Below, in pieces: positions 32,470 through 57,126 of a stretch of 64,000 nucleotides of DNA. The first letter of the stretch is position 1; every line of letters begins with the position of its first letter. The DNA is from Styela clava (Eukaryota): positions 4,278,001-4,342,000 of the forward strand of contig NC_135250.1 in assembly GCF_964204865.1 (NCBI RefSeq), given 5' to 3'. The notes beneath the pieces were generated by a model, which was given only the letters and a program-made list of their open reading frames with translations, did no database searches and was not told the origin of the DNA. Position numbers and translations under genes: made by a program.

Positions 32470-35059
32470 TTTGAGTGATTTTGAAACTCGGAATAGCTTA
32501 ACAATAAGTGAGTAAATTTACTAAAAATAGAACAGAAATTTAATATTAAAACCGAAGCTACAAAATTCCATGTAAAAACTATCAAATCATAAATTACTTC
32601 ATATTGGAAATCAACAAAAAGGCACAAACGTCGCAGAATTGTTAGCGATGAGGCACGCCATGCAGAACTGCGGACTCAAATTTAAACTCTCCGCCCCGCC
32701 CTCGACTCCGACCAAAACCCGAATCTAAATCATTCACTATTTTGTCGTCTGTTCCTCTATATACGATAGCGGTTGCCTCGAACTTTTCCATCAGTATTAC
32801 TTTTGCATTTAAGTCAATGAGCTTTGAGCACACTTGCATAAAAGTATCTCCTACGATTTTCGAAACTGGTAAAACTATTTATATAGAAATACTGGCACTC
32901 TTTGACACGATTCTAAATTTTCTCATACTTATATAAACGTGAGAGTCAAAATTGATTTCTTAAAAAAAATTTAAATAAGATTCAAACGCTTCAGAGTTGT
33001 GAGTACTCGCAGTTGAATGCTTTTTTTTGAGTCTGCAGCGCTCGAAACTGATTATTTATGAAATTTACTTGACTCGGACTCGACGCGAACGCTTCAGGGT
33101 CGCAGTCTACTGTTGAGGATTTCGAGTCTGTAGCACTTCTTTTCGGCAGCGACCACGACGACACGGTGGTATGAGTGTGATATCGACAGGCGAAACTGGC
33201 CTTTTTATAGGCCCTCAATTATTTTTGCTTCCGCTCTTTCGGTCCAGAAGAGTATCGAAGAAAAAATCCGCACATGACGCTGTAATAATATGAGAGAGCA
33301 TTACGATATTGCAGTGTTGGTGCGAAACAGAGAAAAAATACTCGTTGCCTGGACTGATATGCGCTTATTTGCTTATATGAAATTCTTTCAAAGACAAAAA
33401 GAATGCTGGGCCAATAAACCTGAGATATATCTTGTAAACAGTGGTTCGCGCAATCTTCTGAAAATCTCCTGAATTTTTCAAATTCACGACGCATTAAGGT
33501 TCTATATTACAATTACAAACCATCGCGCCCGGAAAGGAAAATTTAATTGATAAGCATCAATTTATGGTGAAGAAAAGGGGAATATATCCACATTTGATCA
33601 ATGCGATACGCGAGCTTGTGTTTATGGACTTACACGATTATACCGCTGCTGTTTAATAGCTCTGGCTGACTTTTGTACAGTTTTACCTGTCTTCACGCTG
33701 TAAAACGTCACTATAAATTTGCATCTATAAATTGCGCATCTAGCTAACTGAACAAAAATTTCACTATGCTAATGTTGCAAAGCAAAGTTTGATTGCGCAT
33801 TGCAAAACCCGATTGTTACATTTATGCTGACACGTATTTTGTTGATTGATATTTTTTAAAATGCATTTTTGCCATACCAGTGTCATCAGAAGCAGTAGAG
33901 CGCTTATTTAGTGCGGTGGATTGTAGTTAAATGCAAAAACAGATGTTACCCGCTTTTGTTATGAACTCTTTGAACACCAGATTTGCATATAACATGTAAA
34001 TTAAGGAAATGATTCAGGAATTATCCGGATTAACTACATTATTAAAAACAGTCGATGAACAGAAAATTGATAATTTTCTGAATGAGCAGAGATGACTCAG
34101 AGGCAGAATGGCAGAGAAATAGAATAAGAGTGCCAGAATGATGCTGAATTGTCATAGTTAGACAATACTCCTAAATTCAAAGTTAACGAAGTCAATCAAT
34201 TTTATCGTCTTTCATGTCTCTTTGCACATGCAGTCCTATTTACTAGACACTAAATCTAAATTTTCATAAATTCAGTAATCTTTATTAAATTCTATTCTTA
34301 CGGACATAAATTGCTATAAGATGGGATGGGACTATATATCTCAATGACAAGCCCTCCGCAGTGATTTTGAAACTGTTCGCCGTTGGATATTTTCAGGTGT
34401 GCACTGACGCTTTCTGAAATAACAATAAAGCAATTGTATTGAGTTTGATTAAAGATAGAATTTAATATTCAGAATGTAAATTATTCTGTTGTTCAATAAC
34501 GGCATTTTATAAACTAACACTATTGTGAAAAATATATGACGTCTTTTAACCAACATCTCTCCCAAATCTTTGTTCCCTTAATTTGTATTTCTTGGCGGAA
34601 AAATTGAGAGATCATAAAAGCAGAAATCTCCAGATTATGCTCACACAAACGGAATTATACCACCGTCGGTATCTCCGCCCCTGAAATGGTAAATGTATCA
34701 ATTCTCACATTCTGAGAACGTTCTTGCTCCCTTATCAAAACAAATAGTTGCATGCACTTTGCTTCAAGCAAAGTCGCTAGACCTCGATCAATCATAGTGT
34801 GCCATCTGATGGCTTCACGTCCGTTTATTAGTCCAAGTCGTGTATGTGATTAGTTAGCCTGTTATTATTTGTTTCAGGTGGATGGATTAGCTATAAAGAC
34901 TTCTTACATTAAAGACAATCAACTAAATATATGTATAAATTTGTAAATAATGGTCCGTGCCGTATTGGACTCGAGTGTGGATGTGATGCTCCAAACAGTG
35001 TTAGACGAAAGTCCCTACAACCCTGGTCGCGAGACCAGTCACGTCCTAGTTTGAGCCCC

Positions 35060-41575: not shown

Positions 41576-44500
41576 CTAAACAATAATAAATTTAGCAACG
41601 AGAAGGCTGATAACGGATACAAATATGATGCTTGATTTGATGCTTCCGGCACTTGAATGGGTTGCTGCTGAATCTGCTGCTGCAGTGGTTGCAGGTGTGA
41701 TGTCAGCTCCGTTACATCCATCTGAATGAATTTAAAAAAGTTTCAACTTTAAATTGACATTTCATCTTTCTATTTATTTGGATATGGATATCGCAGGTTG
41801 AATGTGATGCATGACGTAATAAATTGAGTATTCGATACAGAGTCGGAAAGATTTCTTTCCTTCAAACAATTTTAATTCGTATGTGACTTACTGTTTGTCT
41901 AGAACACGTTTAGGAGTGAAGTCGTGATATCTCATAGAAACAATTTTATAGTAAGAGTGACAGCGATGAAATTCAGTGTTTCTCAAACTGTGTGACGCGG
42001 CAAACTAGTGCGCCGTGAGAGATTCACAGGTGTGCCGCGGAACTTTTTGGAATCTTAGAATATAAGCTATTCGTTTACGAAATGACCTGTTTTTCAATCA
42101 TTGTTTCCCAAAAAGTTTGTACGAGTTTTGGCTATACGCTTACAAATACTATTCAATCATCGGTGCAAAAGCCGTCAAATTAATCTTTGCATTGTCATTT
42201 GCACAGATTTTTTACTCTGATTGAACTTAAAAGCAAAAAGGAAGCGACTTTTTGGAATTGACGATGAAATGCGGGCGTGATTGGCAACAACGGAACCTTG
42301 TTTCAATGTTATTTGTTCCTGAAAACAGGCGCTCCCATCGCATTAACATTTGTAGAATAAATTTGTTTAAAGCTAACTTCATTTTTTTACAATTGTGCCG
42401 CAATTTTCGTTTATTTGTCTAGTGCGACACAAGCAAAAAAAGTTTGGTAACCACTGGCTTAAGGCCACGTTTCCCAGCGAGGAAGTAATTTGAATGAGAA
42501 GGAAATATTACTTTGTATTTGCGTGTGGCATTACTAGTATTTCATACTTATTTAGTCGATTAAAAAATGAAAAGTTGATTTTACCGAAAACGAAAAACTG
42601 TTTAGCTAACATGATCTGTCAAAAAAGATATTCTTTCCGGTTTGAATGATTTTGGATAGGATTCATAATTGTGTGTGCCATTACTAATATTTTATACTTA
42701 TTTAGTCTTACTGTATTGTATTCAATCTATATTTATGTAGACATTATAAACTATAGAAAATGTTCGGTGCTTCCGTAGTATGTGCACCAAGATGGCGCAC
42801 AACCTGAACGTGGTATTGTATCAGGTGAGGGTTATAAGGTTGTGCGCCATCTTTATACACAAACCACGGGAGCGTTAAATGTTCAGGGGTCAGCGTACAA
42901 ATCGCATGTATCACAACCAAATGTTTTGTTATGGATTGAATGACAAAGAAGAATAGAGTTTTAAGCGTAGTAAGGGAGGAATTCAGCGCTTAAAAATAGA
43001 CCAAGGAACTGAAGGAAGGGGTTTGTCAAAAAAGATTGAGAACCACTGGTTGAAGAGTTGGACTTGTACATGTAGACTATGCCCACTACATTGCATAGGG
43101 TGTAATAAACTGTGTAGGTAATGCCGAATCAAAAAAAGTTACATTGATTCCGAGATATAGCAGCTTCCTTGCTCTGATGGAAAGGCGTATAGAAGTATAC
43201 AAAAAAAAAAATACTAGAACTTACCCTTATTGCAATGGCACGTTTTCGAGGTTACATTATGCTCAGTGGTTGTTTTGCAGCCTGTTGTAGTAGTCGAGTT
43301 GCTGTTACATGATCGCGCAACAATCCCTGTAAATAATAATACGACAAATTAAAACAATTGAAGTTTTAGACTAAAATCGAAAGTAATTGTGACATTAAAT
43401 CAACAATTCGTATGAACAAGAGCCGAAGCTTCAAATGTCTATTCACCGATTCTCAACCTGTAGGCCATGGCCTACTGGTGAGCTATAGAAACATTCTCAA
43501 GTGGGTCACAAATTTATAAAATTGCGGTACTCCCGAAGCATGTGACCCAAAATGGCGGACTCCGGAACGTAGTATGTGTACCAGGTTGGGGTTAGGCCAT
43601 AAGTTCAGGTACAAATACTATGCAAGTCACTTGGCTAGTCCACGAAATTGTAATAGAACTAAAATAAGAAAAATTTGAATGAAATTATGGCCTTAACCTA
43701 ACCTGGTACACATACTACGTTCCGGTGTCCGCCATCTTGGTTCACATACTTCGAGAGTACAAAATTGCTATGGTCATTGAAACAAGTTCTTTCATTTGCG
43801 TCGCAATAGTTAAATTTTTAGTGTAGTAGCAATGAACGATGATGCAGCTTTTTATCATAATTATTAAAGTAAAAGTGTTTATTTTTTGCAAGAGATTCTT
43901 GTTTTCACGTAGTTTTTCCATTGCATGAATAATTCAACGGGCCTATATATTTCCAGACCACGAATAAAAAAAGGTTGAGAACCACTGGTCTATGCAGTGA
44001 GTATTGAAAATTTCAAAAGCGTTGTTTTATCACTCGTATGCCGTTCAGATTGAAAATGAAACCAGGCTCGGGTTTTATTATTGGACATATTGAATTGTCA
44101 CCTGGATCGTTTTGTTATTGTCGTCGTTGATTTGTAAAAAAAAGTATTCGTGCCGGTTTGTTTTCATAATTTTAACGATTAGGAATAGTATTTTTCCGTA
44201 ACGCTTTATAATGGATGTCATAAAATAACCGTTTGGTAAACTGTCGGTTTTATAAGGATAATGTTTTAAGACTTTTATAAGCAATGTGTGAAGCACTTAC
44301 CCTTCCAAGAATCCCACCGACAAGTCGAGATTGAGCTAGGGCAATTGATGAGTTGAGAAGAAACTAGCTCTCCGGCATCGTTGCAGTTCATACAAATGTA
44401 GCATTGAATAGCGTAACCTTAATTACAAGAAATAAAATGAATAAAAAGACAGTATGCACAGATATATGGACACGAACCCCAAAACCGAATTCAAAGCTTG

Positions 44501-44948: not shown

Positions 44949-46584
44949 TTTGAGTGATATCGAAGTTTACAACAGCTTAACAATGAGTAAGTAAATACAC
45001 TAAAATTAAAGTATAATATTTAAACCAAAGCTACAAAATCATTTGTAAAAGCTATTGAATCATAAATTATTTCATATTGGAAATCGAATGGTAAACGCGT
45101 TGCAGAGTTGTTAGCGATGACACATACGATATGCCATGCAGGTTTGCGGACTCAAATTTCAACGACTCCGCTCAAAGCCTGAATCCAAATCATTCACTAT
45201 TTTTGTCGTCACTTCATCTATACGTTAGCGGTTGATAGAGTCGAAATACTTATATAAACGAGGAAGTCAAAATAAATTTTACTCAATAAAACTAAAATAA
45301 AATTCAAACGCTTCAGAGTTGTGAGTTCTCGCCCTTTAATGCATTTTTCAAGACTGCAGCGCTCGAGACTGATTATTTATGAAATTTTGTTGACTCGGAC
45401 TCGACGCGAACGCTTCAGGGTCGCAGTCTACTGTTGAGGTTTTCGAGTCTTTAGCTCTTTTTTTCGGCAGCGACCACGACGACACGATGGTATGAGTGTG
45501 ATATCGACAGGCGAAACTGGCCTTTCTATAGGCCCTCAATTATTTTTGCTTTCGCTCTTTCGGTCCAGAAGAGTATCAAAGAAAAAATCCGCACATGACG
45601 CTGTAATAATATGAGAGAGCATTACGATATTGCAGTGTTGGTGCGAAACAGAGAAAAAATACTCGTTGCCTGTACTGATATGTGCTTATTTGCTTATATG
45701 AAATTCTTTCAAAGACAAAAAGAATGCTGGGCCAATAAACCTGAGATATATCTTGTAAACGAAGGCAGTGGTTCATGCAATCTTCTGAAAATCTCCCGAA
45801 TTTTTCAAATTCACGACGCATTACGGTTCTATATTACAATTACAAACCATCGCGCCTGGGAAGAAAAATTTAATTGATAAGCATCAATATATGGTGAAGA
45901 AAAGGGGAATATATCCACATTTGATCAATGCGATACGCGAGCTTGTGTTTATGGACTTACACGATTATACCGCTGCTGTTTAATAGCTCTGGCTGACTTT
46001 TGTACAGTTTTACCTGTCTTCACGCTGTAAAACGTCACTATAAATTTGCATTTATGAATTGCGCATCTAGCTAACTGAACAAAAATTTCACTATGCTAAT
46101 GTTGTAAAGCAAAGTTTGATTGCAAAACTCGATTGTTACATTTATGCTGACACGTATTTTGTTGATTGATATTTTTGGAAATGCATTTTGGCGATACCAG
46201 TGTCATCAGAAGTAGGAAAGCGCTTATTTAATGCGGCCGGATTGTAGTTGAATGCAAAAACAGATGTTACGCGCTTTTGTTATAAACTCTGTGAACATCA
46301 AATTTGCATGTAACATGTAAATTAAGGAAATGATTCAGGAATTATCCGGATTAACTGCATTATTAGAAACAGTCGATGAACAGAAAATTGATAATTTGAT
46401 GAATGAGCAGAGTGACTCAGAACTAGACAATACTTCTTAAATTTAAAGTTAAAGAATTCAATAAAATTTTGCATGTCTTCTTCTACATGCAGTCTTATTT
46501 AGTAGACACTAAACCTAAATTTTTCTAAATTCAGTAGTTTTTATTGAATTTTATTCCTATGGGAATCCCATAGGATGGGACAGG

Positions 46585-48639: not shown

Positions 48640-50782
48640 GACAGGCATAAATTACTAAAAGATGGTATGAGACAGATAGTTATGTCCTATGGACAAGCAC
48701 TCCGCAGTGGGTTCCCAGGTGTGCACTGAAGCATTCTGAATTGATAAAAAGGCAATTGTATTGAGTTTGATTCAATATAGCATTTAATATTTAGAATGTA
48801 AATTATTTTGTTTTTCCATATCGGCATTTTATAAACTGACACTATTTTGTCAAATATTCTCGACGTCTTTTAACTGGCATTTCTCGCTCGACGTTGTTCT
48901 CCGAATTTATAATTCTTTGCGTAAATTGAGAAATCATAAAAGCAGAAATCTTCAAATATTGCTCACACAAACGAAATCATACCACCGACGTTATCTCTCC
49001 CCTGACAAGGCAAATGAGTCAATTGTCACAGTTTGAGAATTTTCTTGCTCCCTTAAAACAAATATTTTCATTCAGGAAGTTTGCTTCAAGCGAAGTCGCT
49101 AGACTTCAACTAAGCTAGCGTTTCCCAACCGAAGAGAAACTATTTGTAACTTATCAAAAGAGTTATGTATTTGTAGGACCGTTTTCACTGGTAAACGCCA
49201 TTTTCTGGATATTCAAATACAATTATATTCAAGTTAGGAATTCAACCGTAGTTTCGCATCTCAAAAACTTAGGGGGGGGGGGGGGGGGGGGGGGGTGTTT
49301 ACCGCCTACAGCGTAGAGTGCGGATAAGTGATAGAAGAAAACTTGAAAGTCTCATTAAATGCTAAACCACCCAAAACTACCGCAATACCCTTCATGTTTA
49401 TGTGAGGACAGTTATTGTAATAAAAAATTTTATTTGGTCAAAATCACAATGAGAATGCAATAAATAAATAAGCAAAATTGCACAAACATAATTTACAGAA
49501 AATTTTACTAAAGTGCATTGTTGTGCGGGGAGTTTGAGGAAATTGAATACACACAATCATATGGCCACCAAGACCTCTAATAAGATTCATATATTTATTC
49601 ATGTCGCTTATTAACCTTGCATGGCAAATTAACCTAGGCTTGCGGGTAGGGATATACGTTTCAGAATTTCAAATCGATTCGAAGAAATTTAAGAAAAAAT
49701 GCTTGATTCTATTCAGAAAGAAAAATAGATACCACAAGGCAACTGCACGACACAGCAGCGCTACCGTTATATCGACCGAAAGCGTTTATTATCCTTGCGT
49801 TTACAGCTTTCCAAAGCCGTGACACTCCCAGAGTCGTTATATTTCATATTGGTAGCAGCTTTCGAGGGACCAATGGTTTCGCTCAATTTTGTTCGACTAC
49901 TTAAAATGTTACAAAGTTTCACAAATATTTGGAACGTTCCTTCAAATTATCTACATAATAATATTATAATAAAACATCATTGCTTCATACCGTATGCCTG
50001 CGATGCTTGCCTCGTTATCATTGGTTCTTTTAAAATCATGGCGCATACGGTATACTAACTATAGCGATTATAATTTGGATGAATTTTGAAGGTCAATTTT
50101 AGAAGAAACAATCGCTATAAATCCGATATTATTTGCAAACATAATTGTATGTGAGTAAATATGTAACTGAGTATAGCTTTATGTAATAAAAAATAAATCT
50201 TAGCCGTAATATATTTGGTAGTTGATACATCCATGCAGTGTGTTTTTCTGGTAACTTTCTTAATTCTTCAAGCTCATTATTGTTATTTTATCAAAATTTA
50301 TACTATATTTCTTCCAAATTTGAGAAAAGTTGACGATAATATGATGATATACTAAATAGAATCAGATTCGGAAATATTCGAATCGAAACATTGTGATTCG
50401 AAATTCGATTCGAAAAAAAATATTCGGAACTTACATCCCTACTTGTTGGAAGTGCTGATCATCTCTGATTATTTAAACGTTTGATTGTCGCCCATATACT
50501 GGAGCGTAGCCATTAATTCTCATGGGGCTTAGACCGTAACAGACAGCGGGAAAACGTGGATTTCCAAGAGATTTAAGGATCCAAAATGCGTTTCAAGGAG
50601 AATGAGAATAAAAGGACACCCCTGCCCCCAGCACAAAAAAAAAATAAAATAAGGATAAATTAGGCCCGAGTATTATTTCTCGCAAAAAAATGAAATAATT
50701 GTCTTATTTTCGGAGACAGAGTACATGGACGAGGTGGCGGGCATCGAATTTGTACACGAGGTGTGTACCTGCTATATATACC

Positions 50783-51080
50783 AGATGTGGGCAAGGTTTT
50801 TGAAAAAGTGGGCCAAAAATTTTGCCCGCTTGGATTTACGGGCCGCGTAAGTGTGACGTAAAGAGTTACATTTTATGAAAAATATTTACAGTGTTGCGAA
50901 AGAAAAAGTAGGAAACAATAAATTCGAGATAAAACTCAATTTAATCGCAATCTCAACAAATTCCTTGAGCTGTTTTTCATTTGAAACATCAAAATTTAAT
51001 TTTAGTTTGTGGTTGTGGCAGCATCAGGCGGGACAGATTGAATTACCCAATCACGCGGGCCGAAGTTTGCACATGTCAGC
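50783..51080. mobile_element. Degenerate hAT-type MITE
   Basis: cagatgtgggcaagg...gcgggccgaagtttgcacatgtcagc. Its right part is the reverse complement of about 12450-12560. Confidence 0.55.
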
Positions 51081-51905
51081 GCTACCATTATAGTCAAACC
51101 TGAGGCATACGATTCATAAAAGTTCTGTTCGTCACTATTCAAATTTCTCGATAATATAGGCATATAAATATCACGTCCTTGTTACTGCCATATTTTCTTG
51201 CACATCTTCGACGTTATCCTCATTTTTACCTTTATTTTTTCTTTGAAGATACCGTTCGCTCAATTTGGCTTCTACTGCTGTTATGTGAGGTGGAGGGGCC
51301 GGCAAGACCCAGAATGCAAGGTACGAATATTAGTCCGTTCCAGAGACCGTATCCAACGACACACACGAATACCTGAATTATAGAAAATTGACTTTGCTAT
51401 TATAGTATTAATAGTAAACGTTTTAAGCGAGTCGACTGCTAAATGGTAAATGTTTTAACAAGTTTTGAAGCAATCTATAGACCAGGGTTGTGGATTCGGT
51501 TTTTGAAATGTTGACATTCTGAACTGAACTTGAAATCCCAACAATTTTAAATAGCACCGTAAAATCAATAAGAAAAACAAGAGAACTATGCTCAAATATA
51601 TGGACACGTAGAGCCACATAATTTTGATGACGTCATAGCGAAAAAAAGAAATAGCTTCCTGGAGAAAAAATTTTATCTTTAACGACTGAAAATTTCAAAG
51701 CAATTGCTCCAGTATTCGACGAGTAAAAGTAACAACCTTCTGGCGACCTCTTCCGTTATTGGGTACTGGAAACTTATATCAATAGATCCATAGGTTGCAG
51801 AGAAAAGCTATTTTCCCAAATAACAATAATCAAGACAAAACATTAGTACATTTCGTGCACAATATGAAAAATATTTTTAAATAATTGTATGATTATTTTT
51901 AACAG

Positions 51906-52157
51906 TTAAATTACGCTGGTCGAGAAATTGATTGTGAAGTGGATTGGAAGTTTAAAAGTTTTAGACTGACGTGGGATGCAAAATGTCGGGACAAATTAAA
52001 CCCATCAATTATGCATTTGTGTGGAGGGTATAACAGCGATGTTGGAGCCTGTGAAGCTTCCTTTTCGTTTTTGATCCAATATGGCTCCGATATTGGAGTT
52101 TATCCAACTCCGTGTGATCGTGGCAACTTTGTTAAGTCTTGTGTTCCCCCTCCGTAA
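51906..52157 (+). CDS. Terminal exon of a putative anti-lipopolysaccharide factor (ALF)-like protein; 5' exon(s) unresolved
   Basis: Acceptor tttttaacag| is followed by 83 open codons: LNYAGREIDCEVDWKFKSFRLTWDAKCRDKLNPSIMHLCGGYNSDVGACEASFSFLIQYGSDIGVYPTPCDRGNFVKSCVPPP*. It aligns by eye with ALF (SI...S..GA.E.S...G). A candidate upstream exon at 51249-51320 (ag|...AAG|gtacga) is in phase 0. Confidence 0.6.
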   Translation, partial: LNYAGREIDCEVDWKFKSFRLTWDAKCRDKLNPSIMHLCGGYNSDVGACEASFSFLIQYGSDIGVYPTPCDRGNFVKSCVPPP

Positions 52158-55100
52158 AAAAATTGATTCAAGTCCATTTTGTGTGTTTTGAGAGCGATAA
52201 GTTGATTTTTTTTTTCGTTTATTTTTTTTTTATGTATTTTAAAATGAATGACTAGAGCAATGTATTTCTTGAGAAAATATAATTTGAAACCTCATTCATC
52301 CTTTCTCTTTCACCAGAGGCGAACTTATTTTTCATGAGGCGCCCTCAAAAAATACTCAAAGCGCACTTACACGAAAAAAAATTACTGCCTTCAAATAACA
52401 CTGAATTTTGTGATCTCTTTAATGTATACATCATGCCATTTGAAGTTTGAAAACACGTTGGCCCAAAGACTGTCAACTATTCTTCCTCACCTTTGCCTGA
52501 TTTTCCACTCGCTACCCTCGTTAGGGCAGATAAATTAACTCCAGCTCACGAAAGTCCGGCCTTATTTTGTGAACCCTGTCCTACATTAAACCTAAGAGTA
52601 CTGTAAAATTCCAAATAACAAATATCTCTCTATCTGTGCGTTCATTCTATTATTGTGCTGAAAACTCGAATGTTTTATTGAAATTTGCTTTTTTTAGATG
52701 CATTCAATTTATTTTTCTCTCAATTTTATCTAAATTCCAAAAGTCAATAACACAATCGGATCTACACGACAAAAAATTACGTTCTTCATATCAATTTCGA
52801 TAAACATCGACAGCGATGTTCTATAGCTTTGGCCCATTATGACCGTCATTATCGGCTTTGTTTATTTCCTATTTATTAAGCTTTATTTTTTATTTTCACA
52901 CGTTATCATATGATATTTCATAAATAAAAAACGTACTAAAATAAAATAGCAGTTTCTTACATACCAATATCAGTTTGTACAGAGGGTTATATGTACGAAA
53001 AGACGTAATGAGACAGAAAAAAAGCAAAATCACCAGCGAATTACTGTTGTCCACGGGTGTACGATATTATATATTATTTGTCGGTTGGCCATACAACCAA
53101 CTTCACACATCTGACTAGATTCCACAGAAAATTAAGTTTTTGCAATGTACGCAACAAGTTATAATTATAAAATTCCGCATCAACAAAATACATTACCGAA
53201 TAGGGCCACAGTAAATGGCTTGGGAGAGACGGGTCGCGGCCCAGGGCCACATGTTGCACAAATGCGAACTGTAGGACAATACATATATATACCTAGATCA
53301 GAAGAGTATTGACGACAGCACAATAAATTAGGAAATTTATTTTTTCCTTGACTGACTTCGATTTACGAATTTACTCCAAGTTAAATGCTTTGAAAAACAG
53401 TTGGGCGACAAGAGGAAAGGCCGACATTAGGGCGCTCCAGAAGTGCGTGTACCAATATGGAGGTAACTAATTTCGTTCGCCTACTTTACGTCAAGTTGCG
53501 TAAAGAACTGAAACCTATGAGCAGAAGGTATATTTATTTGTCTAGTTTAGGGGAAAGTGGAGAAGGTTGGGACACTTTTTTCTTTTGCATATTTTGAGCC
53601 GTTACCTCTGCATATTCACTTAAGTTTGCGAGACTAATGCATAGAGGGGTAAATGTAGTTTTTATTCAGCAACAAAGAAATTCCTTTGCGACACACATCT
53701 TACTACCAAAATGCTTTGGAATACGTCTGTCAAGTGTCCCACTGTACCCCACTTGTGGGGCCTATTCGGACAGAATAGTCTGTCGAAATTCAACGAAGTA
53801 TGCCCTTAAAAATAAGCAATTAATCAGCATAATCGTCTAAAGAACAGGGAGACTTCAAATTTGAAGATTTAATATTTTTAAAATCAATGTTCAACTGAAA
53901 TACTTCAGATATTTTGGCAAAAAATTTTGCAAACAAATTTGATTATTTCCTTCCTCGAATCTAAATCTGGAAATATTATTGAATCTCGAATATATTCCAT
54001 TTTGGACCATGGGTCGAAAAAAAACCATAATATTACACAAAATATAACGCATCTCTAGGTCTCTAAGGACTTATTGTATCAAACACTGTCGAATTGTGCC
54101 CGGTAGGGCATGTCCCACTAAACCCCGGTCCATTGTCCCCCATAGGAAACAAATATTTTTAGACCATCCCACGGCGGAATTCGGAAGGCACATCCACTCG
54201 CCAACGTTATGAATATTTTACAATGCACTATAGCTGATAAATATCTGACGGTGGTTTGTCATGTTGAAAAGGCTAAAGTAGAAAAAGAAAAAAAATGGGA
54301 TGGTGAAATTTTAGTTTCAACCTCCCAAAACCAATTTCACCCCATATTTCGCGCCGCTCTACCCGTTCGCGGGGACGTTGTAACTCACCAAAGGTCGGAT
54401 CGAAACATCGAACCGTGGACAGGATTGCGGATATAGTATCAGTGGGAAAGCTGATTTTGAATAGAACTAAAATAAGGAAAGTGGGAATAACATTATGGCA
54501 AACCCTAAACTGATACACATACTTCAGGACCGACATAAGAACCCCGATTTGGCTTAAATTGCAAAAGCGCAAGATACCGAGACAAATAAACCAATTATTT
54601 AGGTTCAGCTTAGGACGAAAATTGGTTAACAATCACCATATCTAAATAGGTAGGCTACAAATCGAGCGGGTTACCCGGTAACTCAGTATGTTCCATGGAT
54701 TTTTATTTTAAGGAAGGGGTTGGGAGCAAATTTGCTGATATGTATTCTTGTTATTAATGATAGAAGTATTTGTAACTTATAAAAATGTGTTGACTTATCA
54801 TCTTCACCGGCATATAAGTTACTTTTTGAATTCAATTTTATTTACGTTAAGAAATAAGGTCAAGTGTCACACCTGAAAATTAATGGAGGGAGAGTGTAAA
54901 TCAATGCCCGGTGTTAATATCAAAACGGCAATCAAAAATATATCATAAACAAAAATCATTACTATTTGGAAAATACAAAAAATCGATGTCACTTAAAGTT
55001 TCAATACCTTTGGTGTAAGAAGTCAATATCGATTTTAAGTAAGTTTATAATCATTGCCATAATAAACGAAAAACACGACTGCTATCGCTTCAGCGAAGTT

Positions 55101-55483: not shown

Positions 55484-57126
55484 CTATAATACAGCTATAG
55501 CAACGAGGAGACTGATAACCGATCCAACTATAAAGCTTGATTTGATGGATCCGGCGCTTGAAGTGGTTTCTGTAGCAGTTGTAGAGGCGGTATCCATTCT
55601 GTTGCATTTATCTAAATAAGTTTGGAAAGTACTATTAATTTCTGAATTATAATAACTAGCTTTTCACGTTCTGCAGCTTAAAGCTTTTGTTTAAATCTTT
55701 CCAAGATCAAAGCATTTAAAATCCAAACTCACCTTCTTTGCATATACAGACTTCCCTCATCACATCACCAGCCAACCTTTGTTTGCATCCAGTTTCATTG
55801 TGTTTGGAGCAAAACAGACTAACAGTACCTAAAAACGAAGTTGAAGATTGACTTGATATTAGCGTATCGTATTTTAAGGACATTAAGGCCTTCTTCAAAT
55901 ACTTTTTTTTCTCATAAATCGATCGCGCGCTTTATAAGCCTGTGCGCCTAATATATCGATCAATTAGTGGCGCAGCGGTGTGGCTAAGCGTTAGGAATAT
56001 GCTCGCCACCGCAGTGACCGCACCTCTGATTACGCTGCGTGGGTTCGCAGGTTCGAATCCCATGCGGGGATAGCTATGTGCGAGAGGATTGCTGGACTCC
56101 TCGCCGTCTTTGGGTGGTTCAAGTAACTGCTGGTCGGTTACGGCTTCCTTCACCATCAAGTCCATGCTTTCCAAAACAAATAACTAACTAATCCCATACC
56201 CGACATGGAATGGTAACCGGACGAGATGCCATGGTTCGCCATATGGTTAAGCCGTTTTATCGGCTTTCCACCTCCCCAGGATAGATATGTAAATCCTATC
56301 CTATCTTGGTTTCTAATTCTTTACTGCATACTGTCGAAACCAGCACCGGTTGTACTTAATGCACGTGAACAGCCCTAGTCCGAGCATTTACTGACGGTGC
56401 GCATTATGGTCCGTAACATACGGTAACTGATTCATCATTGGACACGAGATGAACATTTTGCAAAAAAATTCTCGTTGTTTTTGGGGTGATTGCTGTTGCC
56501 GTGAAAAATCCAGTACTCGGGAGTGGTTGAAATCTTTGAAAGGCTTTCGCTGTTTGATTTACAAAAAATTATTTTTGCCGTTTTTCAGTTAAAATGGGGA
56601 TCATTTTTATTTCTTTGCAGCAAACTCGGTGCTCGTTAATGACCTCACCGAGCAGACGTCCATAAGTGGTCATTGTATCCAGATACCTGAACATTGCCTT
56701 TTTTTTCTTATTCGTATTGCTCAAGATAGCTGAGATATTTGTAAAGTTACATGAAATATTTAGATCAATAAAGTATCTGCGCGATATGAATAAAGTGCAC
56801 ACCATTTTCAGTTTCTTTGGCACATGTAAGGAATTCATCACGGCAGTCCACCACCATAAGAAATGTTGTCAACTTCTTATCGTTGCAATGGGAGCAAACG
56901 TAGCACCTGATTGCGTAACCTGGTTAAAAAAAAAAAAAATTTCACGTGTTCCAAATATCATCCTTCTTTCACGGGGAGTAGTGCAACACGAAACAGATGG
57001 TTTTGAGATTTGAAGATCAAATAAACTATGCTCGATGCTACAAGAAACAGCAAAAGTAACAATTTTTATCCACAAACCTGTAGTAGCAATCATCAAACAT
57101 AAACAAGCAACCAATTCCGAATTCAT
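55484..57126 (-). CDS. Ly6/uPAR GPI-anchored protein, copy B9, 129 aa, 14-aa stalk
   Basis: Exons 57126-57078, 56919-56803, 55828-55733, 55611-55484: MNSELVACLCLMIATTGYAIRCYVCSHCNDKKLTTFLMVVDCRDEFLTCAKETENGTVSLFCSKHNETGCKQRLAGDVMREVCICKEDKCNRMDTASTTATETTSSAGSIKSSFIVGSVISLLVAIAVL*. Confidence 0.88.
55967..56305 (+). mobile_element. tRNA-derived SINE in B9 intron 2
   Basis: A-box-like TGGCGCAGCGGTGTGG, perfect B-box GGTTCGAATCC (56050-56060), non-tRNA body and (cctat)n tail. The paralogous B7 intron (gatcacttagtg|ctttattgc, about 37427) lacks it. Confidence 0.8.

Follow-up and report, generated by a model that had tools for sequence, protein, structure and literature searches.

A six-cysteine exon in a Ly6 cluster of the ascidian Styela clava: a probable remote relative of the anti-lipopolysaccharide factor domain

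We analysed a stretch of 64,000 nucleotides of the genome of Styela clava (contig NC_135250.1, positions 4,278,001 to 4,342,000), hereafter the window, in which an exon of 83 codons on the plus strand (51906–52157) encodes a domain with six cysteines. An earlier reading of the letters alone (the sequence-only reading) had compared this domain with the anti-lipopolysaccharide factor (ALF; Pfam family PF11630) and had placed it within a cluster of Ly6 genes. Our results make it likely that the exon is a genuine and long-conserved C-terminal domain of an ascidian protein family, that this domain is a remote homolog of ALF, and that the copy in the window is an orphaned paralog residing in the Ly6 cluster.

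Translation of codons 51906–52154 gives a product identical to that of the sequence-only reading, and it is closed by a TAA stop at 52155–52157. A polypyrimidine tract with a cag acceptor in phase 0 lies directly upstream on the same strand (51893–51905; ...tttttaacag, ending at 51905). The window is AT-rich, with a GC content of about 35%, and at the local base composition an open frame of 84 codons has a chance of about 0.002 per start. Paralogs had been suggested as a check on the exon, and a search of the genome with the peptide only brought out four further exons, making five in all with the window copy. The position and the phase of the acceptor are identical in all four paralogs examined, and 12 alignment columns are invariant between them and the window exon. 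The low probability of the open frame, together with the presence of paralogous exons having the same acceptor position and phase, argues that the exon is more than a chance open reading frame (ORF). A profile search raised the number of family exons in the genome to at least 12, and the family hidden Markov model (HMM) matched the window exon with 94.9 bits (E 1e-24). Positions of cysteines and aspartates and a Y-P-x-x-C-D motif are conserved in the family, which is encoded in one terminal phase-0 exon, and the window exon, with cysteines at residues 10, 27, 39, 49, 70 and 79, fits this pattern. Assignment of 51906–52157 as the terminal coding exon for an ALF-like six-cysteine domain is thus based on the translation, the family HMM and an AlphaFold model. 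Among the other copies, the one on contig C3 (18551101–18551343) contains five stop codons and is clearly a pseudogene, and the paralog on contig C10 (5618748–5618999) has lost the final cysteine, a short hydrophobic tail (LVTLIVL) replacing G-C.

A profile of the five Styela exons was used to search 1.84 billion representative proteins, and 42 matches were obtained at E ≤ 0.001. About 30 of these are ascidian-type proteins carrying the domain at their C-terminus, with named carriers from Styela, Clavelina lepadiformis, Phallusia mammillata and Ciona savignyi, and in these carriers Pfam places Sushi and kinase domains ahead of the module. Proteins in which Sushi repeats are followed by a linker and a cysteine-rich tail (XP_039265260/61, annotated as 'P-selectin-like', and XP_039270086 of Styela clava, H2YMF6 of Ciona savignyi and CAB3260926 of Phallusia) share with the window exon the domain itself, the intron position and the positions of the Cys, Asp and Tyr-Pro residues. 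Judged from these sequences, they are the true family of the window exon. In Styela clava, the annotation gives five exons to each gene of the C18 tandem pair and to the C5 gene; these genes encode a signal and a cysteine-rich head, a coiled coil, a Sushi region spread over two exons, a CxCxxCxxGxxC...TSW linker and, in the last exon, the ALF-like domain.

In a subset of the carriers, a RIPK-like kinase at the N-terminus is followed by a membrane span, then by two to four Sushi repeats and a CxCxxC linker, with the ALF-like domain at the C-terminus, as exemplified by XP_039261602 of Styela ('RIPK2-like') and by CAK8693823 and CAK8676596 of Clavelina lepadiformis. The outermost, C-terminal module of these proteins is the domain of the window exon; they are long, span the membrane and carry a kinase on the cytoplasmic side, whereas the window locus codes for the terminal module alone. 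We regard them as candidate pattern-recognition receptors. The usual setting of the domain is that of a C-terminal module of Sushi-repeat proteins or kinase-linked receptors and not that of a free peptide, a context which was absent from the sequence-only reading. The receptor-like proteins in our set are P0029 (XP_039261602 of Styela clava), P0030, P0032 and P0039 (the last two from Clavelina lepadiformis), their public labels being 'RIPK2-like' or none, and receptor-like loci of the genome are located on contig C13 at 15036021–15036269 and 15056333–15056578.

In comparison to the Sushi-linker family, the window copy lacks an upstream Sushi/linker exon, the first cysteine of the CxC pair and an annotated gene model, and it ends in VPPP after the last cysteine. 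An HMM for the Sushi/linker exon found it within about 1.3 kb upstream in all nine other Styela loci scanned (E 1e-19 to 9e-2, the weakest match being the broken C3 copy), and tblastn mapped the exon in the C5 gene and in both genes of the C18 pair. Upstream of the window exon, on the plus strand, the best match of the same HMM had an E-value above 2 and tblastn returned none. By this comparison the window exon is the only intact copy without an upstream Sushi/linker exon. It is also strongly diverged: its closest relative is 38% identical at most, its terminal branch in the tree measures 1.46 against a median of 0.72, and it does not fall within the clade that the other Styela paralogs form, pairing weakly with a Phallusia protein (38% identity). 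The window copy is accordingly best read as an old and fast-evolving paralog. As an old lineage whose frame is still open, unlike that of the stop-riddled C3 copy, it argues for long-term constraint.

The connection to ALF runs through the remaining 12 of the 42 profile matches (E 5e-22 to 1e-4), which are cysteine-free proteins consisting of one to five repeats of the domain. Short JGI contigs are the source of ten and a long ENA contig that of another; the twelfth is XP_019630273 of Branchiostoma belcheri. PF11630 is the top Pfam family in each of the 12. Its cut-off of 25 bits is exceeded by ten of them (26–44 bits), including the amphioxus protein with 32.9 bits, the other two scoring 24.1 and 18.0; the alignments cover approximately positions 20–91 of the 100 in the PF11630 profile. 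Comparison of 35 ascidian domains with 39 repeats by hhalign gave a probability of 98.2% (E 4e-14, 73 columns). In the reverse search, a profile built from the repeats only gave scores of up to 48.7 bits for Styela domains and of 9.8 bits for the window exon. When the repeat profile was run against the sequences of the Protein Data Bank (PDB), its sole match at E ≤ 10 was the shrimp ALFPm3 (PDB ID: 2JOB; E 0.005, residues 27–96). The start of strand 1 (G-R-x-I) and the start of the helix (G-A-x-E-H-A) recur in the ascidian domains and in the bridging domains that qualify for PF11630; of these shared motifs ALFPm3 retains just the Gly that leads strand 1 and the Ser-Gly preceding the helix, both in common with the ascidian domain.

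Since profile searches succeed in both directions, the bridging family has 2JOB as its only PDB match and a confident model of the window domain fits 2JOB, a remote kinship of the ascidian domain with the arthropod ALF domain is supported, though indirectly. What stands of the ALF identity given by the sequence-only reading is a distant relationship through this chain of profiles and the model; a direct match to Pfam or PDB does not form part of it. Of the repeat proteins, those from JGI/IMG (P0003–P0005, P0007, P0008, P0012, P0013, P0026, P0034 and P0035) lie on contigs of 0.9–2.2 kb, while P0041 is the ENA protein and P0042 the Branchiostoma belcheri protein. The full-length five-repeat proteins have a hydrophobic anchor near the N-terminus. 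A scan of metagenomes for the DNA that encodes one of the bridging proteins gave no match.

The AlphaFold model of the window domain, calculated from an alignment of 18 sequences, is of high confidence (predicted local distance difference test, pLDDT, 94.3; predicted template modelling score, pTM, 0.82) and consists of three strands (residues 6–17, 20–29 and 36–42) and a helix of 18 residues (45–62). With Foldseek, the best superposition was obtained on 2JOB, with a template modelling (TM) score of 0.64 and a root mean square deviation of 1.5 Å over 62 columns, E-values being weak throughout. Among 48,161 chains 2JOB ranks third, level with folds of the double-stranded RNA-binding domain (dsRBD; PF00035), and many such domains are structurally tied with it as matches to the model. 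The modelled fold thus agrees with ALF, yet alone it cannot part ALF from dsRBD-like folds, a distinction which the sequence profiles provide; the tie suggests that the ALF fold may be a dsRBD-like fold used outside the cell. The likeness to the dsRBD is at the level of the fold, as neither the exon nor its paralogs have a dsrm sequence match. In contrast to the dsRBD, the window domain would be extracellular and rich in disulfides, and the dsRBD N-terminal helix is not present within the exon. A three-finger domain of the Ly6/uPAR family is also distinct: the window exon has no Pfam match, and three strands with an 18-residue helix do not make an all-beta domain.

Like the ascidian model, 2JOB has a core of a beta-sheet and a long helix, and its N-terminal hairpin is closed by a cross-strand disulfide, for which Cys10 and Cys27 would be the ascidian counterpart. 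The beta-hairpin of the window exon extends on the plus strand over 51933–51986, from the codon of Cys10 (51933–51935) to that of Cys27 (51984–51986), and is the counterpart of the lipopolysaccharide (LPS)-binding hairpin of ALF. The window exon and 2JOB could be compared in one frame, both falling on positions 324–393 of one repeat profile. In this frame Gly5 of the window domain shares a column with Gly31 of 2JOB, Glu7 with Glu33, Ile8 with Cys34, Cys10 with Phe36 and Cys27 with Met53, and the ALF Cys55 is an insertion immediately before the column of Asp29. Because of these shared coordinates, Cys10 and Cys27 are placed two residues inside Cys34 and Cys55 of ALF on each strand, leaving 16 intervening residues in place of 20 (C-x16-C against C-x20-C). 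The model has its turn at residues 18–19 and therefore sets residues 10 and 27 opposite each other. Both the inward shift of the hairpin cysteines and the preserved cross-strand pairing that the sequence-only reading had put forward are in agreement with these results, the latter as far as the model goes. The other four cysteines (39, 49, 70 and 79), conserved in the family alignment, probably fasten the C-terminal end of the chain to strand 3 and to the helix.

Further differences from ALF are apparent. The ascidian exon has no N-terminal helix, the structural alignment covering 2JOB residues 27–101, after helix 1, and it has four additional cysteines and a Y-P-x-P-C-D tail. ALF is a free peptide of about 100 residues, while the ascidian domain normally occurs at the C-terminal end of Sushi proteins. 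ALFs are described as arthropod peptides and the host here is a chordate; the sequence-only reading had considered the find notable for a non-arthropod, and Styela clava, as an ascidian, is one. Ascidians belong to the sister group of vertebrates.

A number of results weigh against the interpretation given above. A Pfam scan of the window exon and its four paralogs returned no family at E ≤ 10, and a search of the whole genome with PF11630 matched no family exon and gave one unrelated weak match, so that the profile check against the ALF family, which the sequence-only reading had advised, turned out negative for the exon and its paralogs. No match was found among the PDB sequences, 2JOB included, with the ascidian profiles; single bridging proteins (P0004 and P0041) likewise gave no ALF match in a PDB sequence search, and a search of the ESM Atlas gave no usable match. 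Classical ALFs have a strongly cationic, amphipathic hairpin, and it is this hairpin that binds lipid A and LPS. The hairpin of the window exon, in contrast, is barely cationic, its loop having four basic and three acidic residues (net +1, the value also stated by the sequence-only reading), and the domain is acidic (net charge of −1 for the whole exon product and an isoelectric point of 5.7). The Cys10–Cys27 disulfide, too, is deduced from the secondary structure of the model.

At the level of the gene, we found in the 12 kb upstream no convincing hydrophobic exon in phase 0 that starts with ATG, and no protein containing the window exon in either of the two protein collections (a word-indexed search and the profile search of 1.84 billion proteins). 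Three presumed RNA runs have no listed contig on the exon; since the runs are made up of contigs and are only guessed to be RNA, this counts only weakly against expression. The summed depth of the three runs is 0–1.9 over 51865–52048, a stretch that takes in the exon's first two thirds. All three show depth over 52049–52232, where the DNA run stands at 4–5 times single-copy, and for this reason the signal is attributed to a repeat, the likely source being a short repeat or a T-rich low-complexity tract just past the stop.

Two states are conceivable for the copy in the window. It may close, at the 3' side, a small gene that lacks annotation and whose leader exon escaped recognition, or it may have been stranded by a fairly recent loss of the 5' part; our preference inclines somewhat to the stranded exon. 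As a working small gene, the locus would splice a leader, either the segment 51249–51320 or an unrecognised one, to the exon and would secrete a free ALF-like binder or antimicrobial of about 9 kDa; we consider this possible but rather doubtful. In its favour, the frame is intact and all the fold-critical residues are kept in spite of deep divergence. The number of cysteines is even (six), and the extra CxC cysteine which the C18 and C5 paralogs have beside the linker is lost, as would fit a life without the linker. The segment 51249–51320 (plus strand, 72 nt) can be read through in phase 0, is followed by a strong GT donor (8.3 bits with a simple matrix) and starts about 80 nt past a TATA motif, TATAAATA, that was located at 51163–51170 on the plus strand, where the sequence-only reading had noted it. 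The overlapping signal-like frame described by that reading is also present. However, the first codon of the segment in the assembly is ATA and no in-frame ATG occurs in it, it would not make a typical signal peptide, and its connection with the ALF-like exon is unproven; the segment, its donor and its phase are therefore as described, while the role of a leader is not borne out. An ATG directly before a GT at 51443–51447 (plus strand) likewise exists as had been stated, with a donor score of 5.7; because it would add Met alone and no leader, it is an unlikely start for the six-cysteine domain. A tblastx comparison with the paralog loci revealed no conserved upstream exon.

The history of this upstream region is complicated by a duplication. 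The segment 50657–51536 (plus strand, about 0.9 kb) has 85.5% identity to C1:4343672–4344564, about 2 kb beyond the end of the window; it contains the TATA motif, also present in the other copy, and a short ORF, and excludes the ALF-like exon. The duplicate lies 15 kb downstream, with a core that is 92% identical. It carries an ATG exactly at the first codon of the candidate exon, a point in favour of the small gene, but its frame is broken by a 1-nt deletion in a G run, its donor is mutated from GT to GC, and the signal-like frame contains a TAG. A frameshifted allele, which the sequence-only reading had suggested, was considered and rejected: the read variants (a 1-nt deletion at 51295 and A>G at 51251) belong to the duplicate (C1:4344132–4344396), which is also the origin of the sole variant in DNA run X2. 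A second collinear block of the duplicated region is found at 49339–49606 of the window. With no Sushi/linker or leader exon, an ATA start, no RNA contig and no protein, a working gene at this locus cannot be demonstrated; a live small gene seems to us the less probable of the two states, and a recently orphaned, stranded exon the moderately favoured one. The stand-alone ALF-type gene of the sequence-only reading accordingly found no backing in a 5' exon, a start codon or a transcript.

A different possibility is that the likeness to ALF reflects a common dsRBD-like alpha/beta fold only, the ascidian domain being neither homologous to ALF nor related to it in function. The failure of the direct Pfam and PDB searches speaks for it, as does a weak dsrm match of one bridging protein (E 0.027). 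Yet what ties the ascidian family to Pfam-qualified ALF-domain proteins is not the fold but sequence profiles that work both ways, with PF11630 heading the Pfam families in the entire bridging set, 2JOB as the only PDB sequence recovered by the bridging profile, and the G-R-x-I and G-A-x-E-H-A motifs recurring on both sides. We therefore hold this explanation to be improbable. That the frame is open by chance, or that the exon is a long-dead relic of no coding meaning, for which the missing expression and gene model and the high-copy repeats on both sides could be cited, is very improbable indeed, since the family HMM score, the conserved acceptor phase, cysteines and motifs refute a chance ORF, the model reaches a pLDDT of 94, and a long-dead copy so diverged should hold stops as the C3 copy does.

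Returning to the reading of the exon as an orphaned paralog of an ascidian ALF-related family, a working picture of the module can be proposed. In this family, the disulfide-rich alpha/beta module follows the Sushi (CCP) repeats and the CxCxxCxxGxxC...TSW linker, either in secreted proteins or in the outer part of receptors with a cytoplasmic RIPK-like kinase. It would keep three strands and a long helix, strands 1 and 2 forming the hairpin which in ALFs is the binding site of lipid A, here clamped by a cysteine pair moved two residues inward on each strand. Since the module ends Sushi stalks, some of which are wired through the membrane to a RIPK-like kinase, it may sense a ligand at the cell surface or in the body fluid, and could serve as an extracellular ligand-binding tip, the most plausible target being a glycolipid of microbes or some other amphipathic surface. 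Its low charge speaks against the window copy acting as a classical cationic antimicrobial. A wider proposal, which we put forward tentatively and consider rather unlikely in its entirety, is that the hairpin module of ALF type was not invented by arthropods but is an ancient extracellular domain of eukaryotes, that in ascidians it forms the sensing tip of Sushi-stalk proteins and RIPK-like receptor kinases in an undescribed chordate recognition of microbial glycolipids, and that the window locus provides the free soluble tip as a decoy or opsonin.

These observations point to a divergent, cysteine-rich form of the ALF domain that is widespread in ascidians, where public annotation names its carriers 'uncharacterized', 'P-selectin-like' or 'RIPK2-like'. 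In the members that combine the domain with Sushi repeats, a membrane span and a RIPK-like kinase, invertebrate chordates may have a novel kind of microbial sensor, a proposal that can be put directly to the test. The range of ALF itself appears to be widened, as the amphioxus protein passes the Pfam cut-off, as do repeat proteins on contigs of metagenome collections. The window locus is the less important part, being an orphan and peripheral, possibly inactive, member of the family. A review of 2025 treats ALFs as defence peptides of arthropods, namely chelicerates and crustaceans (PMC11767717). In those parts of the literature that were accessible, no link of ALF with ascidians, amphioxus, Ciona, Styela or tunicates was found, co-mentions not being visibly connected, and the sole non-arthropod mention found in them under DUF3254, the old name of PF11630, is a rotifer gene in a table.

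The immediate neighbourhood of the exon is rich in repeats. A high-copy repeat at 51497–51864 makes up most of the putative intron just 5' of the acceptor, its depth exceeding 1000 times single-copy in DNA run X2 and being high in all the other runs as well. Another, at 50761–51128, lies upstream of the TATA motif and is recognised by its read depth and by matches elsewhere in the window. On a larger scale, the plus-strand exon is situated between minus-strand Ly6-type exons at 44278–44418 and 56768–56923, in accordance with the location inside a Ly6 cluster that had been proposed. Ly6-type first three-finger exons (GYAIxCYxC...) occupy the plus strand from 1021 to 24124 and the minus strand from 32124 to 63070, the change of strand, which falls between roughly 24 and 32 kb, marking two oppositely oriented arrays. 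Two identical cysteine-rich open pieces of 49 codons are present on the plus strand at 33554–33700 and 45881–46027 and probably belong to a repeated unit or transposon.
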